Assembly: GCF_002571385.2 (NCBI RefSeq)
Contig: NW_019218244.1
Coordinates: forward strand, 62,001-126,000
Direction: 5' to 3'
DNA: 64,000 bases
From: Stylophora pistillata
Taxonomy: Eukaryota
Part shown: positions 7,621 through 15,600 of the stretch, piece after piece
How the letters are laid out: each line of letters begins with the position of its first letter
How positions within the stretch are numbered: position 1 is the first letter of the stretch
Notes under the pieces: generated by a model
Databases searched by the model: none
Seen by the model: only the letters and a program-made list of their open reading frames with translations
Told to the model about the DNA's origin: nothing
Program-made: the position numbers and the translations under genes

Positions 7621-10600
7621 TCTGTGGAGTGTAAAGAATAAAATAAATTAAAGATCACGCGAAGGTTAAATAGTGAAAATGTGCAAAATGATTTTCTAAA
7701 TCCGAAAAACAATTTTGGAGTATAGATGTTAAGAATAAAAAATGGAAATAGATTTGGAAGCATTCCTGTTCTAGAAAAAGTGCCTGATAACTAGGGAAAA
7801 TGTTTGCCAGCAAGTTGCACTTCAAGATCGTCGTTGATCATTGTAACGTAATCGCAGCATAAAAGATTCTCGACAGAAATATATTTAGTCTCATGACCTT
7901 TACACCTCTCTTTTCATCAGGATCGCGCACTTGACGAAATTGTTTATTTTTCAGGAATAATTGTGTACTTAATCACTCTCCTACAGAGATTACGACCCTT
8001 TAAAAACGCTTTACTGCCTTGAAAAACTAAAAATGGTGTATGATAAGCGCGATCGTCGATTCAAAAGAGATGTATTACTTGAATAGTGAACTCCTAATTT
8101 ATCAGTGTTCGTAATCTATTTTGAATAGAAATAGTAAAGCAAGCAAGAACTGTGTTCTGATTAACCTGTTTGCTATGAACAGGATAAGGAGGGTGGGGAA
8201 AGCCAACAGCAGACTTCGTGCCTCTGTCCTCCTAATGTCTCCCCTGTTGATGCCTGCTATGCAGGTTAGCTCTTGTTTTCTATTTTTAAAAAATGTTTCT
8301 TTAATACAGTTGTGTTACATACCAGCATGGGGTCGAGTTACATGTTTGTAGTTCCAACGGAACTCCAACGCAGTTGTTTCCTCCATTTGATGGTGTTGGG
8401 TTTGTACACATGCGGAATCTTATCTGATTAGCACCTCCACAAGTCACAGGACAGGGGTTCCAGGCTCCCCAGTTTGACCAGCCACCGTCCACGCGCCCTG
8501 TGTGGACGAGAAACCATAAAAAAAAAAGTGATGGGAAGAAAAAAAGGATAACTCCTCCGCGCTTGATAACTTGTCACATTTGCACAATCGCTTGCATTTA
8601 TGAGGAAATAATGATAAAAAAAAGAAAAGTAGAACTGATGAGAAATCAACCGTGTATTTAACAATATTGATATCCCTTTTATACATGATGAAAGAAAATG
8701 TAAATGACCAATCAGGAAAACTGTTCTGAGCGATGTAGATCTTTTTATAACTGTTGTGAGGAAATTGATCTCATTCGATCCTAAGTCTTCCGCAGTCCCC
8801 AAACCCTCTTTTAAAATAAAAATAAATAAATAAATAAATAAAGAATTTGATTAACTGAGTTTTTCGTTCCACCGTCTGTTTGCTGGATTAGTCCAGAAGT
8901 TATAGTGAAAGAGAGCACACCGCTCCGAAAGAGCATCATGAGCTCACCTGGAATCAGTTCGCAGCATCTGATCTGCGTGAGACAGTCTATCGTGGAACAT
9001 CTTGTTTTGTACAATCCCTTAAGGAACATCCCATTTGGACACCGCTTCATTCCATCTGCTATGAAATTCACAGTGATATCTCTACATGGTCCATCTTGGT
9101 CTGGGTGGCTCACAGGTTTACAGCAAACACCCTCGCCAATGTCAGCCAAGAAATTTCTCCCAACAGTGAAAAACCCGCGCAGAAGGTATCCTGGATTCTC
9201 GCACAATGCCCACGAATCATGGCTAGTTGGAAATTTTTTAAAAAAATTTACAACTAGCCTTAATATAATTGAATGAAATCGTATATACGGGATGATCGTT
9301 TACATTAACGCACACACTTTTTTGCCAGGGAGAGGAGAGAGAGCGCGCTTGAAGATCGACTTCGCAAACATCTCCAAAATATTATGCGGAGATGCTGACT
9401 TGGATAAAAAAAACCCATAAAGAAATTACATTCTCAAAAAACTCGGAAGCCATTCGTATTAATTTCGTGGCATCTTGATTTCTTTATTTCTATTGATTTG
9501 ATGACTAATTAATAATTACTCGGAAGAAATCATGTCGAGTCATAACAACCAGGCAACGGGTAATTGTTGTTAAAGCGTCGCGCAATATTAAATTAAATTG
9601 GTTTCGTAGAACCTTCTTCGAAAATTTGTAGATATCAATCAAGGAAAAGGTATATTGTGAGCGATTTCTCAAACCAAGCTTGCGATAAAGCCTAAGCGAA
9701 TTTCTTTCATTTTCAGACTAATGAGCAACCAGGCACTTTTAAATGCGCTCGTGCACGATGCAAAACGTGTCCTTTCATTCACAACACTGATAAAATATCG
9801 GGACCTAAACGATCCATTAAGATCACCGATCACTTCACGTGCACCTCCGCCAATGTAATCTATTGCATAACTTGCACTTATTGCAAAAAGATATACATCG
9901 GCGAAACAGGCAGAAGACTAGGTGACCGATTCCGAGAACACCTTCGAGACGTGGAAAGGAATGACAAGGACACATCGAAACCAGTCGCTAGACATTTTAA
10001 TTTACCTAATCATTCTAAGCAACATATGGCAATCTGCGGTCTTTCCTTGCACTTAGGTGGCACGGAAAGCCGTAAAAATCTTGAACAAAAGCTCATCTTT
10101 CAAACCGGCAGTCTAAATCCCACAGGGATCAATGAACGCTTTTCATTCCACTAATTTATTCATGTTTTTCTCGTTGCCATGCACCCACCAATAACGTAGC
10201 TCCATTTTCTGCCTTTAAAAGCACACACAACCCACAATTCCTCTATTCGCTCCGACGAAGGGCTAACGCTCGAAACGTCAGCTTTTGTAATCATTACGGT
10301 GGCCAATTTACCATTTCAACTTTGTTGATATATCCAAATTATTTCGTTACTCCCACCGACGCAGCCCCAAACAGTTTCTTTCGAAACTATCAGCCTTTAT
10401 TCATGATTTTATCAGTTGAGCAAGAAGATAGCAGCTAACCTTCCTTTATCAGTTGAGCAAGAAGATAGCAGCTAACCTTCCTTTATCAGTTGAGCAAGAA
10501 GATAGCAGCTAACCTTCCTTTATCAGTTGAGCAAGAAGATAGCAGCTAACCTTCCTTTATCAGTTGAGCAAGAAGATATCAGCTAACCTTCCTTTCCTCT

Positions 10601-12668
10601 GAAGCAAACGTCAGCACCAGCGCAGTACGGTTTATTCAATAGTATATCATCCTTGTCGTGTTCNNNNNNNNNNNNNNNNNNNNNNNNNNNNNNNNNNNNN
10701 NNNNNNNNNNNNNNNNNNNNNNNNNNNNNNNNNNNNNNNNNNNNNNNNNNNNNNNNNNNNNNNNNNNNNNNNNNNNNNNNNNNNNNNNNNNNNNNNNNNN
10801 NNNNNNNNNNNNNNNNNNNNNNNNNNNNNNNNNNNNNNNNNNNNNNNNNNNNNNNNNNNNNNNNNNNNNNNNNNNNNNNNNNNNNNNNNNNNNNNNNNNN
10901 NNNNNNNNNNNNNNNNNNNNNNNNNNNNNNNNNNNNNNNNNNNNNNNNNNNNNNNNNNNNNNNNNNNNNNNNNNNNNNNNNNNNNNNNNNNNNNNNNNNN
11001 NNNNNNNNNNNNNNNNNNNNNNNNNNNNNNNNNNNNNNNNNNNNNNNNNNNNNNNNNNNNNNNNNNNNNNNNNNNNNNNNNNNNNNNNNNNNNNNNNNNN
11101 NNNNNNNNNNNNNNNNNNNNNNNNNNNNNNNNNNNNNNNNNNNNNNNNNNNNNNNNNNNNNNNNNNNNNNNNNNNNNNNNNNNNNNNNNNNNNNNNNNNN
11201 NNNNNNNNNNNNNNNNNNNNNNNNNNNNNNNNNNNNNNNNNNNNNNNNNNNNNNNNNNNNNNNNNNNNNNNNNNNNNNNNNNNNNNNNNNNNNNNNNNNN
11301 NNNNNNNNNNNNNNNNNNNNNNNNNNNNNNNNNNNNNNNNNNNNNNNNNNNNNNNNNNNNNNNNNNNNNNNNNNNGCACTATCTTTTCGCAGCCTCCGCT
11401 CATTTCATTCAAACGCGACAAAAACTTAGGCAATTTTTTGGTCAGAAGTTCTTTTCAGACTAATGAGCAACCAGGCACTTTTAAATGCGCTCGTGCACGA
11501 TGCAAAACGTGTCCTTTCATTCACAACACTGATAAAATATCGGGACCTAAACGATCCATTAAGATCACCGATCACTTCACGTGCACCTCCGCTAATGTAA
11601 TCTATTGCATAACTTGCACTTATTGCAAAAAGATATACATCGGCGAAACAGGCAGAAGACTAGGTGACCGATTCCGAGAACACCTTCGAGACGTGGAAAG
11701 GAATGACAAGGACACATCGAAACCAGTCGCTAGACATTTTAATTTACCTAATCATTCTAAGCAACATATGGCAATCTGCGGTCTTTCCTTGCACTTAGGT
11801 GGCACGGAAAGCCGTAAAAATCTTGAACAAAAGCTCATCTTTCAAACCGGCAGTCTAAATCCCACAGGGATCAATGAACGCTTTTCATTCCACTAATTTA
11901 TTCATGTTTTTCTCGTTGCCATGCACCCACCAATAACGTAGCTCCATTTTCTGCCTTTAAAAGCACACACAACCCACAATTCCTCTATTCGCTCCGACGA
12001 AGGGCTAACGCTCGAAACGTCAGCTTTTGTAATCATTACGGTGGCCAATTTACCATTTCAACTTTGTTGATATATCCAAATTATTTCTTTCATTTTAGTT
12101 TGGGGCTAGTACATCCGCCCCTGTAGTTAGCAAAGGGAAAATTCAGAAATTTCTTCATTCAGTTCTCAATTATCCAATTTTCTCTTCGAAAAATTTTTAG
12201 ACTTGAATATTTTGGGATTTTTCGTTTAAACTTAGCCTACGATCTAGTAGACACGAATTCCTCTTCCTTTTGGGGGAGAGCATCTACCCAGTAAGCAATA
12301 TTTCCTTTATCCCCGTGTCGCTATTTAAATGAGGATTTTATCTTTAACAATGATTACACTTTTACATACCGTTGTAAGTCAGTCCACCACTGAGCCTGAT
12401 AACAATTGTTGCTCTCCTGAGAGTATGGCTGGTCAACAGAGCAACATCTAGCTGCCTTAATTACACCTGGTCCTGTTTCTAACAGGGCACCATACCCCTC
12501 GCTTCTCAGTCCATTGACATAGTAGACATTATTCGCGCATTGAGAAGTAGAGTCACCAGCGATTGCAAACGTGCTGGTCCAGTCTTCATTTCCACATTGA
12601 CCTCTCGTTGGATTGCTCCATGTTAACAGCAACAGTAATTGGAGAATCACAATAATAAGGACTTGCAT
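7621..12668 (-). CDS. Secreted Cys-rich protein, copy A (~249 aa): signal peptide + three-repeat biomphalysin-small-lobe-like domain + TSP1
   Basis: Exons 12370-12668 (MQVLIIVILQLLLLLTWSNPTRG|QCGNEDW...), 8948-9222, 8323-8497 (DGGWSNWGAWNPCPVTCGG...RFRMCTNP, TSP1) and a terminal exon from 7621 that completes the stop TG|A. AATAAA at 7513-7518 (minus strand). Phases are consistent and the structure is conserved in the paralog. Confidence 0.85.
10248..10283 (+). ncRNA. Minimal hammerhead-ribozyme-like motif in the PLE pLTR; second copy at 11990-12025
   Basis: CCGACGA-AGGGC-TAAC-GCTC-GAAA-CGTC. The core deviates from CUGANGA by one U>C change. Confidence 0.6.
10408..10592. repeat. 37-bp minisatellite, 5 copies, inside the PLE
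   Basis: Unit TTTATCAGTTGAGCAAGAAGATAGCAGCTAACCTTCC at 10408, 10445, 10482, 10519 and 10556, with no spacers. Confidence 0.95.
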
Positions 12669-15600
12669 AGTTGTCAATTTTGGATCTGAATTTAGTTTCA
12701 GAAAATGTTGAGGGGAAAATGTGAGAATGGTAGAACAAAACAATAGAAAAAGCACTAATAGCTTTTACCGAGCAATTATCAATTTTTTTTTCTTACCAGC
12801 ATTTGATTGTTATCACCAAGGAGTTGCAAACGATGCCAAAATTAAAGCTCTTTGGGTAGGGTCCCTTTTGCTCCCTCTAAGCATCATATTACTTCGCAAA
12901 CTGTCACACAATTTGCGAAGTTTTGTTTTTAACTTTGAGTTCTCATTTTCTAACACTGGAAAAAAAAAATTCCTTTTCCTGAGCTAATGGCCCAATATCA
13001 ATTACTATTAAAGAAATATAGGAGAGACGTTTGATAGATTCTTTCTTCGTTGCGTGAGAATATACTTGACATTCTTGATTTCCTCGAATACGAACTTATC
13101 TTCCGTAAGGTTGGGCTAATAAGGCTTTGTTACCGGCCACAAGAGGATTTAAAGACCGGATTTTCTTGGATTTTGAATGCTTTCCCGTGTCTGAAAATTT
13201 TTTCGGGTCAGTATTTTAGGTGTAGTCAGTCACAGTTTTCCCATCATCACATCCTCTGAGGATCTGTTCAGTAGTCCGCGCAAGAGACTCCCGATCAATA
13301 GTCTACCAGATGAAACGGACCGCTCGTATTCGAGCATCTGTTGCATGACAGCAAGTAAACAATACCGAGAATTCATTCAACAGCGATTTCGTTAAATTTT
13401 GAGTTTCAGATTTAAATAAACAACGCCGTTGACAGAGTTTAGTTGTGCACAAATTCAAGAGTGCGAACGATTCCGTTCGCCACGCTACTTTGAACCGCCG
13501 AAAAAAAGCAATCTAAATGAAATGAAAACGATAGAAATCATAAAGTAGTTTCTTGTGCAATCACACTTCCCCTAAAAACCATTAGTGCACGGAATAACTT
13601 GACTTCTTAGAGAAAAACAACATTTATTAAAAGAAACTCAAAACCTGGCGAACTACTGAGCTGATCCTTCATCCCATTTCTTTTTTCCTTTCATATGTTC
13701 GAGGTGAAAGCGTTCACTTGAAATTGTAAACACTGCCAAGTGACGAAAATCTGACTAAAACTAAAGCGGTACCTTCCCTATTTCAAAGTGGATTTGGTGG
13801 ACTGATAGAAAAAAATCCGTACTCACTAGACAGTAAAAAAAAAGATCGAAACGTTTTGAAATCATAGCCATCATACCTATTTCAGAGAAGTCTGAAATGT
13901 TGTCTTCAGCCCCTTAGTAAGTTAGTTTTAGATAACAAGATCAAAATATTATCTATAAATAAAGTGGAGAGAAGTAATCCGTACCGGTAAGGACACGAGG
14001 TATGGCAGAAGACAAGCAATGTTTGAAAGAAGACCTGGATGTTCTTGAGCTTCACTTGGCTTACGATGTCAGTGAAATCGAAACCAAGTTTCTTGAATTC
14101 TTGGCGTGTGGGCGAGATTTTAATCACAACTGGCCAAGCCTATGATGTAGATCATTCCTGAGGATAAACACAGCAGATTAGGATGCATTATCATTACAAG
14201 CTCCTTTTCGCCCATTTTACAAATGACAGACAGCGCATAGATGACTCATATTTGACCACTGGATTTTAGGTGACAAATTAAATATATCTTCGCTTATATT
14301 AAAAACTGCAATTGATCAAAGGCAGAAGGTAAGTAATTTGGACTATTGCCTTTAACAAGGTTACAACCATCCTATATAACAGCTGAAGGCTTTTACGAAC
14401 TCAGCTGCCTATCTTTGAAACATCTGGCTTCATTTCATCGATATATTAATTTTAGAGTTCAAGTTTAAAATTGACACGCAAAAAAAACAAAAAAAACTCA
14501 TTATATGTTTTGTCTTTGATTGGTTACAGTTTTTTGGCCACTTTCCCAATCAGGATGAAAATGATAAATAATACCCGGACTTTGCCTGAAGAGGAACTCG
14601 ATTCTTTTTATATAGAAACAACAAAGATTCTATTTACAATTCTTCGTTGTAAACGGTATTCTTAATTAGTGAGTCATGTTAGGAGCTAAATAAAGTAGGT
14701 TTACCCTAACTCTTGACAAGCAGCAGAGGCCTCTACCACACTGTAGATGAGAAGTTTTTTACTTTTACTTTAAAATATGTTACCTATTCACCTTGTTCAA
14801 AAAAAATTGATATGATGATAGTATTCTGGAATTTATCATCCAGCAAACAATATTTTCGGGTCAACTGACTTTGCCAAGACAAGTTCAAGATGTTCAAATT
14901 TCACTGCTTTAATGAATAATTGCACGTTATAAAGTCAAAGGAAGTCTCGCCAACATTAGTTGTGTTGCCAGACGAGCGAAATGAAGTGAAGGTATTTTAA
15001 AGCTTTAAAACTGGCAACGGACAAATTTTGAGGGTATGTCTCTTTCAATTTTAACTTTCAATACCTTTATACTGCATAGTAGATAAGGTTATATTTAAGG
15101 GAACCTTCCGCAAAACACGGAATTAAAAACGCAAACCCCCCTGAGAGTAGCTCTTTAGGTAAATTGTATTCCATAAATTGCACTCATCTCAGCGAATAGT
15201 ATAACCCATCGCATTTTGATCTAATTATTCAGCCGGTGCTCCTTTGGATGAAGTGCTATCTGAACAGCTTCCTACTCCATCCCAGACAGGCCGATTCTTC
15301 GATGGGAACTAAAGTTTTTATTGAAAGCTTTTACAAGAAGTTATTTCCGGCTGGTCTGTTATTGCAATCAAGTTACAGTTTCAAAAAAGAAATTGGCCAA
15401 CAAGGTTACGTTTGGAATAACACTCAATCGTGCAGTGTCTTAGGTGACCCAAATAACAAATTGGACACAACGAAACTAGGATTTTACTTTTTGTCGCTTG
15501 GCATCTTTAGCCTCATGCGCGTGCGTTTACTGGCGGAATTCCCAATCCAGGTGGTTTTCAAAACCGCTCACGAAACTCTCTGTAGTACAAAAACCTCAAA

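Follow-up and report, generated by a model that had tools for sequence, protein, structure and literature searches.

Biomphalysin-type proteins of hygrophilan snails are aerolysin-type pore-forming toxins in which the aerolysin large lobe, with the pore-forming domains II–IV, is preceded by an N-terminal small lobe, a part thought to set the targets of the toxin, including schistosome larvae in snails. In biomphalysin 1 the small lobe carries 12 cysteines in six disulfides, and AlphaFold2 models give it the form of a beta-prism (PMC12186885). Toxins of this type are hard to make as soluble recombinant protein (PMC12186885). Here we describe LOC111340621, a gene of the coral Stylophora pistillata whose product joins a lobe of this kind to a thrombospondin type 1 repeat (TSP1), with no toxin domain. 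The gene, listed by NCBI as "uncharacterized", lies on the minus strand of contig C460, in a stretch of 64,000 nucleotides (RefSeq assembly GCF_002571385.2, contig NW_019218244.1, positions 62,001 to 126,000) that we call the window and whose own numbering is used below unless another contig is named. A preliminary description of the locus, made from its letters alone, had recognized a secreted protein resembling the biomphalysin small lobe and had suggested a stand-alone recognition protein, possibly an opsonin, lectin, toxin decoy or cofactor.

LOC111340621 is an expressed gene of four exons. Its product is 249 residues long and consists of a predicted signal peptide, three Cys-rich repeats (residues 25–187) and one TSP1; the database protein 'uncharacterized protein LOC111340621 [Stylophora pistillata]' (249 residues, hereafter P0001) is letter-for-letter identical to the exon model. 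Exons were searched singly, while P0001, which was returned by a word-index search, served for full-length queries; full-length coral, octocoral and snail proteins were retrieved with a coral aerolysin open frame as bait. Residues 25–190 of P0001 are colinear with residues 21–187 of an aerolysin-type protein of Physella acuta (P0052; BLASTP, 91 bits, E = 3e-25), and residues 3–192 align with residues 1–189 of physalysin (AXH38019.1, P0114; BLASTP, 96.7 bits, E = 4e-27). Identity to these two snail proteins is 30–31% over ∼170–190 residues and takes in the CC(K)P..HP linker as well as the full set of three repeats; in both, Pfam Aerolysin begins at residue 196. Aerolysin-type proteins of Bulinus and Lymnaea match a profile of the lobe with E values from 2.4e-33 to 8.5e-44.

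By these matches, residues 24–192 of P0001 are a homolog of domain I, the N-terminal small lobe that pore-forming toxins of the aerolysin type carry in animals, among them the physalysin- and biomphalysin-type proteins of snails and the toxins of S. pistillata itself. The parallel with biomphalysins drawn in the preliminary description thus finds its counterpart in colinear matches to snail toxins; the physalysin, Physella, Bulinus and Lymnaea proteins stand in for the Biomphalaria biomphalysins. Shared with the biomphalysin-type lobe are the three colinear Cys-rich repeats, the linker and 12 core cysteines, and for both a structure of three four-strand units is predicted (P0001 model; PMC12186885). 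The differences are equally clear: where the toxins carry the aerolysin large lobe P0001 has a single TSP1 repeat, its repeat 3 contains an additional pair of cysteines (Cys175 and Cys180), and it lacks part of the N-W-W..F-D..G-W-S motif of the family. The snail toxin genes, moreover, are intronless (PMC12186885), whereas LOC111340621 has three introns. Toxin small lobes and TSP1 proteins are each already known; their combination is new, as is the lobe as a large general module, and a description of either a free-standing small lobe or the lobe–TSP1 architecture was not found in the searchable literature.

The structure of the gene was established from assembled RNA: Logan contigs from four poly(A) RNA-seq runs, belonging to four studies, examined over window positions 7000–12700. 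Three GT..AG joints are present in the contigs of all four runs, namely 12370 to 9222, 8948 to 8497 and 8323 to 7621. The coding part of exon 1 (12370..12668; all exons and introns are on the minus strand), defined by the reading frame and an RNA joint, starts with the ATG at 12668, encodes residues 1–99 plus two bases of codon 100 and ends in a phase 2 donor (CG/GTATGT, the slash marking the splice site); the 5′ untranslated region (UTR) extends to at least 12693, with contig ends at 12686–12693 in the four runs. Exon 2 (8948..9222), with RNA joints at both ends, runs from the acceptor ctag/C to the phase 1 donor CAG/GTGAGC and contains the last base of codon 100, residues 101–191 and the first base of codon 192. 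It is separated by intron 2 (8498..8947; 450 nt, phase 1, RNA joints), which lies four codons and one base past the last CC of the lobe, from exon 3 (8323..8497), the TSP1 exon as identified by Pfam and delimited by RNA joints, which encodes residues 192/193–249 and ends with the TG of the stop codon. Intron 3 (7622..8322; 701 nt) is defined by the joint 8323 to 7621 in the four runs. Base 7621 of exon 4 (7203..7621) completes the TGA, and the remainder is 3′UTR with an AATAAA at 7518 and contig ends at 7203–7488.

Of particular importance are the two places in this model at which coding sequence might be missing. Intron 1 (9223..12369; 3147 nt as assembled, RNA joint in four runs) holds an assembly gap, a run of N at 10664..11375 wholly within the intron, together with two plus-strand repeat copies. 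Across this gap, four runs join position 12370 directly to 9222, with codon 100 split as CG/C at the joint and no break in the reading frame. It follows that the gap is intronic and that no coding sequence has been lost in it; an exon hidden in the gap was considered and is ruled out by the same direct joint. At the 3′ end, the junction 8323 to 7621 reads TGC TG/A, that is, Cys followed by TGA, and the protein finishes at Cys249, the last TSP1 cysteine. A stop directly after TSP1 had been claimed before and is indeed found, formed at a splice joint. A longer read-through product ending in WYVTQLY and a TAA (∼8301) was rejected: in the RNA the GTATGT at 8322 serves as a donor and 7621 is the next base, so that the apparent tail and its TAA belong to intron 3.

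The preliminary description had also stated that no aerolysin domain is encoded here, and had named splicing on to a downstream aerolysin exon as the observation that would overturn it. Transcripts proceed instead to the 3′UTR exon, and Aerolysin (PF01117) has no match in P0001 or anywhere in the window. Given this, and given that transcripts pass from TSP1 straight into a terminal 3′UTR exon, P0001 is not a biomphalysin. A few unspliced RNA contigs cover the region of intron 2 (8471–8976) at a depth of 4–20, compared with ∼50–160 for spliced ones, which points to minor intron retention or pre-mRNA.

Pfam recognizes only the last coding exon of LOC111340621, as TSP_1; the remainder of the protein was resolved from its internal repeats. 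Residues 1–23 (12600..12668) probably form a signal peptide: read from the sequence, they have a hydrophobic core of Leu, Ile and Val, end in T-R-G next to Gln24, and are modelled as a lone helix (residues 2–16). Repeat 1 (residues 25–77; 12438..12596) contains Cys 25, 44, 75 and 76 and predicted strands at 25–29, 40–43, 49–57 and 69–77. Repeat 2, placed by a repeat hidden Markov model (HMM) and by alignment, is divided between exons: its first part reaches from Cys89 to the exon 1 donor (12370..12404) and its second part to Cys133–Cys134 (9120..9222), after which comes the invariant CCKP..HP linker. Repeat 3 (residues 146–187; 8961..9086) contains Cys 146, 161, 186 and 187 plus the extra pair 175 and 180, with predicted strands at 146–150, 157–160, 165–172 and 181–188. 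The lobe thus has 14 cysteines: 12 at C..C..CC positions over the three repeats and one extra pair.

Evidence that these segments are repeats comes from several comparisons. Repeats 1 and 2 of P0001 are alike with z = 6.8 (0 of 2000 shuffles scored as high), while repeat 3 is weak alone against repeat 1 (z = 1.4) and repeat 2 (z = 2.3). A single-repeat HMM seeded on repeat 1 only nonetheless detects repeats 2 and 3, both in P0001 and in every paralog checked, and MAFFT spontaneously overlaid pieces of repeat 1 on repeat 3. When coral and snail lobes are aligned the invariant columns are C107, G111, G116, C133, K135, P136, H139, P140, C146, C161 and C187, four of which (K135, P136, H139 and P140) belong to the linker. 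Residues 193–249 are one canonical thrombospondin type 1 repeat: TSP_1 (PF00090) scores 51.2 bits (E = 1.4e-13; cut-off 21.6), the motifs WSNWGAW and CPVTCGG conform to WxxWxxW and CxxS/TCG, and six cysteines are present at 207, 211, 222, 234, 244 and 249. The threefold repetition, the linker and the single TSP1 domain had each been read from the letters alone, and all three readings are borne out by these results.

AlphaFold2, supplied with 148 aligned sequences, predicts for the P0001 lobe three units of four strands with a predicted local distance difference test (pLDDT) of 85–98, and a short helix after the first strand in repeats 1 and 2; the TSP1 part, with few aligned rows, is poorly modelled. 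Comparison of the model with PDB by VIA-align returned a Vip3 domain (Z 4.7–5.1), the PCSK9 C-terminal domain (Z 2.9–3.8) and jacalin-type lectins, VMO-I and Bap1 (Z 2.1–2.5), all of them weak neighbors with root-mean-square deviations of 3.1–5.2 Å. These we take to be three-fold beta-prism or three-module folds. Such three-fold sets of small beta units are the only kinds of structure recovered, but they have no sequence similarity to the lobe. Searches of PDB sequences with exon 2 and with the lobe profile gave no match. The resemblance is best seen as an analogy of shape, the scores being too low to show kinship, and it agrees with the beta-prism described for the biomphalysin lobe (PMC12186885).

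Together these features lead us to propose, with moderate confidence and by analogy to the toxins, that the lobe–TSP1 protein encoded by LOC111340621 acts as a soluble recognition or bridging adaptor that does not lyse its target. The lobe would bind a surface ligand, a glycan or a protein presented by microbes, symbionts or other cells, as has been suggested for the lobe of the toxins; the TSP1 repeat would tether the resulting complex to matrix or to cell-surface receptors; and the outcome would be recognition, agglutination or opsonin-like bridging without lysis.

Several observations weigh against this proposal. The role assigned to P0001 is one that we infer by analogy with a toxin small lobe whose ligand is itself putative (PMC8047071, PMC12186885). 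The RNA evidence consists of assembled contigs, which speak to presence and splicing and not to expression level or tissue. Foldseek searches of PDB with two models returned nothing at E ≤ 1e-3, the best hit being the PCSK9 C-terminal domain (E ∼3e-3, TM score ∼0.3); of the three-fold beta-prism put forward in the preliminary description, the three units of four strands are confidently predicted, and no significant match to a solved structure was found. Finally, in a maximum-likelihood tree of 53 full lobes P0001 and its ortholog P0005 from Desmophyllum pertusum stand by themselves on a long branch, the stem of which measures 1.86 changes per column, and both are without part of the N-W-W..F-D..G-W-S motif. 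Because of the long branch and the partial loss of the motif, the binding properties of these two lobes may differ from those of the rest of the family.

A protein that is small, predicted to be secreted and rich in cysteine could bring to mind a component of venom or of another secretion, with cytotoxic activity of its own. A dermatopontin-family cytotoxin has reportedly been obtained from a fire coral, and toxin candidates of Millepora are said to include both dermatopontin and aerolysin. Yet Pfam finds no pore-forming or enzymatic domain in P0001, and TSP1 repeats are typically found in proteins that serve adhesion and recognition; we regard a venom function as highly improbable.

The genome of S. 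pistillata contains more than 40 copies of the lobe exons: exon 2 has 43 matches in the 398-Mb genome and the lobe profile (A3, see below) 58. Among the regions matched by exon 2 are lobe exons adjoining aerolysin exons. Over-threshold Pfam Aerolysin matches are confined to a single contig, C397; the sole other match in the genome, on C108, is below the cut-off. Four aerolysin-type genes lie on contig C397, and in each of them two exons encoding a small lobe come immediately before the aerolysin exon. S. pistillata therefore has lobe–aerolysin genes of its own. In one of them, a minus-strand gene at C397:130501-140500, the aerolysin part is split over two open frames with a stop within the match, which could reflect either an intron or a broken gene.

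Details of the introns connect the two kinds of gene. In three of the C397 genes the intron between lobe and aerolysin is of phase 1 and lies four codons and one base past the final CC, exactly as does the lobe/TSP1 intron of LOC111340621; the intron inside repeat 2 is of phase 2 in LOC111340621 and in the coral toxin genes, at positions within one codon of each other. The coral toxin genes and LOC111340621 therefore have in common a two-exon lobe cassette and the phase-1 intron that follows it. Paralogs on contigs C453 and C451 have from one to four TSP1 exons after the lobe; further paralog loci are on contigs C2388, C245, C332, C43, C97, C1198 and C365. The cassette ends at a phase-1 intron, which is followed by an aerolysin exon in the toxin genes and by a phase-1 TSP1 exon in LOC111340621. 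Because the cassette ends at such an intron with different exons downstream, the lobe–TSP1 architecture looks like a product of exon shuffling. Lobes also occur in tandem: on contig C94:295001-305000 two of them lie at 2732-4409 (plus strand), where a single open frame runs from the end of repeat 2 through repeat 3 and on to repeat 1 of the second lobe, and two-lobe proteins exist in octocorals (P0053, 361 residues).

The presence of one module in both P0001 and the four C397 toxin genes raises the question of whether P0001 is a regulator or partner of the coral's aerolysin-type toxins, either as a decoy on the same target sites or as a cofactor that co-assembles with the toxins or guides them. 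For biomphalysin a joint action with plasma factors has been reported (PMC12186885), which would accord with a cofactor. Nevertheless, the P0001 lobe is no closer to toxin lobes than to other members of the family (∼28–34% identity, with no grouping), LOC111340621 on C460 and the toxin cluster on C397 are not linked, and many unrelated domains are fused to this module as well. A decoy or cofactor role is in our judgment improbable, and the soluble adaptor remains the function that we favor.

The number of unrelated partners became apparent from a survey of the family at large. The word-index search found only close relatives of the P0001 lobe, and a full-lobe profile built from separate exon pieces (alignment A2) was dropped, MAFFT having aligned pieces of repeat 1 with repeat 3. 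Profile A3, made from P0005 and pieces of exon 2, was searched against 1.84 billion representative proteins and gave 767 clusters at E ≤ 1e-3, of which 522 were at E ≤ 1e-10; hydrozoan and octocoral lobe proteins were found too. The best 148 of the A3 matches were scanned with Pfam for domains accompanying the lobe. Aerolysin was found in 11 of the 148, EGF in 7, TSP_1 in 5, DERM in 4, PAN in 3 and WSC in 2; one protein each had 7tm_2 with GAIN and GPS, D8C, Ig, or VWD. Judged by this distribution, the lobe is a widespread extracellular animal module of at least 767 clusters that is neither toxin-specific nor cnidarian-specific.

Pfam holds no model for the lobe module, and members of the family go by their partner domains only: "thrombospondin-2-like" in Acropora and Montipora, "roundabout homolog 1-like" in S. 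pistillata, "Notch protein-like" in Xenia and "uromodulin-like" in Oculina. The survey thus brings to light a domain family of at least 767 clusters outside Pfam. The preliminary description had envisaged an undescribed cnidarian family: a family without a Pfam model it is, but the restriction to cnidarians falls away with the snail members and the 767 clusters. A similar architecture is that of the coral 'thrombospondin-2-like' proteins (XP_ entries of Acropora and Montipora, and Oculina KAL9952094.1), which are likewise secreted, 300–390 residues long and composed of a lobe followed by TSP1 repeats. They differ in having two or three such repeats and in belonging to another, slower-evolving lobe clade than P0001; their database names reflect the TSP1 part, the lobe being unannotated.

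Individual members show how varied the settings of the lobe are. In Pocillopora meandrina (P0086, CAH3042153.1) it forms the N-terminus of an adhesion G-protein-coupled receptor with GAIN, GPS and 7tm_2 domains, and in S. pistillata (P0061, XP_022809906.1, the "roundabout homolog 1-like" protein) that of an Ig-domain protein, so that the module also serves membrane receptors. The ortholog from D. pertusum (P0005, 200 residues) is 67–71% identical to P0001; its database model ends a few residues past the lobe, in a hydrophobic tail resembling a translated intron, and a TSP1 exon may have been missed by annotation. A protein of 654–665 residues with a full lobe (P0137/P0226; MMETSP0804, labelled Tetraselmis astigmatica) derives from a green-alga transcriptome and from JGI metagenomes. 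It represents either contamination or a non-animal occurrence of the lobe module.

A further relationship is hinted at by dermatopontin, which is also a small secreted module of three Cys-rich repeats. Five lobe proteins (P0167, P0189, P0193, P0026 and P0028) match DERM (PF14704) in one constant register, from positions 34/37 to 131/150; all of these matches are below the gathering score of 28.3 bits, with 27.8 bits for P0167 and 12.7–20.1 bits for the others, and two of the proteins, P0026 and P0028, are coral aerolysin-type toxins. The ESM Atlas clusters nearest to the lobe by protein-language-model features are DERM (0.80–0.87), a result that the tool itself offers as a lead only. Against this, DERM has no match in P0001, P0005 or the separate exons even at E ≤ 10, and the genuine DERM genes of the coral genome are separate loci that the lobe profile misses. 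Dermatopontin repeats end in a single Cys, whereas those of the P0001 lobe end in CC. The dermatopontin family repeats a D-R-x-W-x-F/Y motif; in a pattern scan P0001 lacked this motif, as did almost every family member covered. Membership of the dermatopontin family is ruled out by the lack of DERM matches in P0001 and its exons and by the separate DERM loci. On the strength of the sub-threshold matches, the lobe family is probably a remote homolog of dermatopontin.

The same data bear on the possibility that P0001 is a structural protein of the extracellular matrix: a dermatopontin-like matrix organizer, or a protein occluded in the skeletal organic matrix, with TSP1 for adhesion. Dermatopontins are found in the matrix of mollusc shells and TSP1-rich proteins in coral skeleton proteomes. 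The constant register of the sub-threshold DERM matches in several family members and the DERM identity of the nearest ESM Atlas clusters are what such a protein would lead one to expect; the complete lack of a DERM match in P0001 and the existence of true DERM genes at other loci are not. In addition, a lobe that is repeatedly found fused to toxins and to receptors is more readily understood as a module for binding than as a purely structural one. A matrix role thus strikes us as rather unlikely, and we continue to favor recognition without lysis.

In the lobe tree, P0001 and P0005 belong neither to the aerolysin-linked groups nor to the main TSP1-linked clade, and the backbone of the tree is without resolution. 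Derivation of the P0001 lobe from a toxin gene was considered and set aside: the tree does not show that a toxin domain was lost, nor does it show that the lobe arose independently. The statement that P0001 lacks a toxin domain should therefore not be read to mean that it lost one. A more speculative reading, which we consider less likely than not, is that the small lobe goes back to an ancient animal domain for recognition, of beta-prism form and within the dermatopontin superfamily, and that a horizontally acquired bacterial aerolysin core captured it through exon shuffling. In that case free-standing forms such as the lobe–TSP1 protein would make up the part of the system that recognizes without lysing: soluble receptors for the same kinds of surface ligands as those of the toxins. 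The shared cassette itself suggests how a toxin core of bacterial origin came to acquire, at a phase-1 intron, a targeting part from animals, and the breadth of the family presents the lobe as a recognition domain of animals in general and not as an accessory of toxins. Small soluble proteins with the lobe but no pore-forming part should also be tractable for binding and structural work; a coral genome contains dozens of copies of the module, which is joined to adhesion and receptor scaffolds of many kinds.

LOC111340621 has a tandem paralog within the window (45905..48603, minus strand), which has the same layout, with corresponding open frames for exon 1 (48295-48603) and exon 2 (46489-46884), a TSP1 frame at 45905-46108 and 82–95% protein identity to LOC111340621. 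No gap separates its exon 1 and exon 2 frames. Its layout, including the 3′ end, is predicted from open frames. Both lobe–TSP1 genes are carried by a segmental duplication of ∼9 kb (3530-12711 versus 40228-48644), in which non-coding identity is uneven and varies between 80 and 96%.

The two plus-strand repeats in intron 1 lie on either side of the assembly gap. Copy 1 (9721..10154) has an open frame of GIY-YIG type and is followed, at ∼10400-10600, by four or five copies of a 44-nt unit. Copy 2 (11378..11896) runs out of the gap, and its open frame matches the GIY-YIG catalytic domain (Pfam PF01541, E = 8.3e-5). Over the 3′ parts of these repeats the summed depth of RNA contigs exceeds the depth over the host gene by a factor of hundreds to thousands, which indicates a multi-copy and abundantly transcribed element. 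The repeat is probably a Penelope-like element, copy 1 representing its 3′ part, and high-copy repeats on both flanks probably explain the assembly break at 10664-11375. Downstream of LOC111340621, at 88-2984 on the minus strand, lies the pol region of a long terminal repeat retrotransposon, with RVT_1, RT_RNaseH and Integrase_H2C2 domains.

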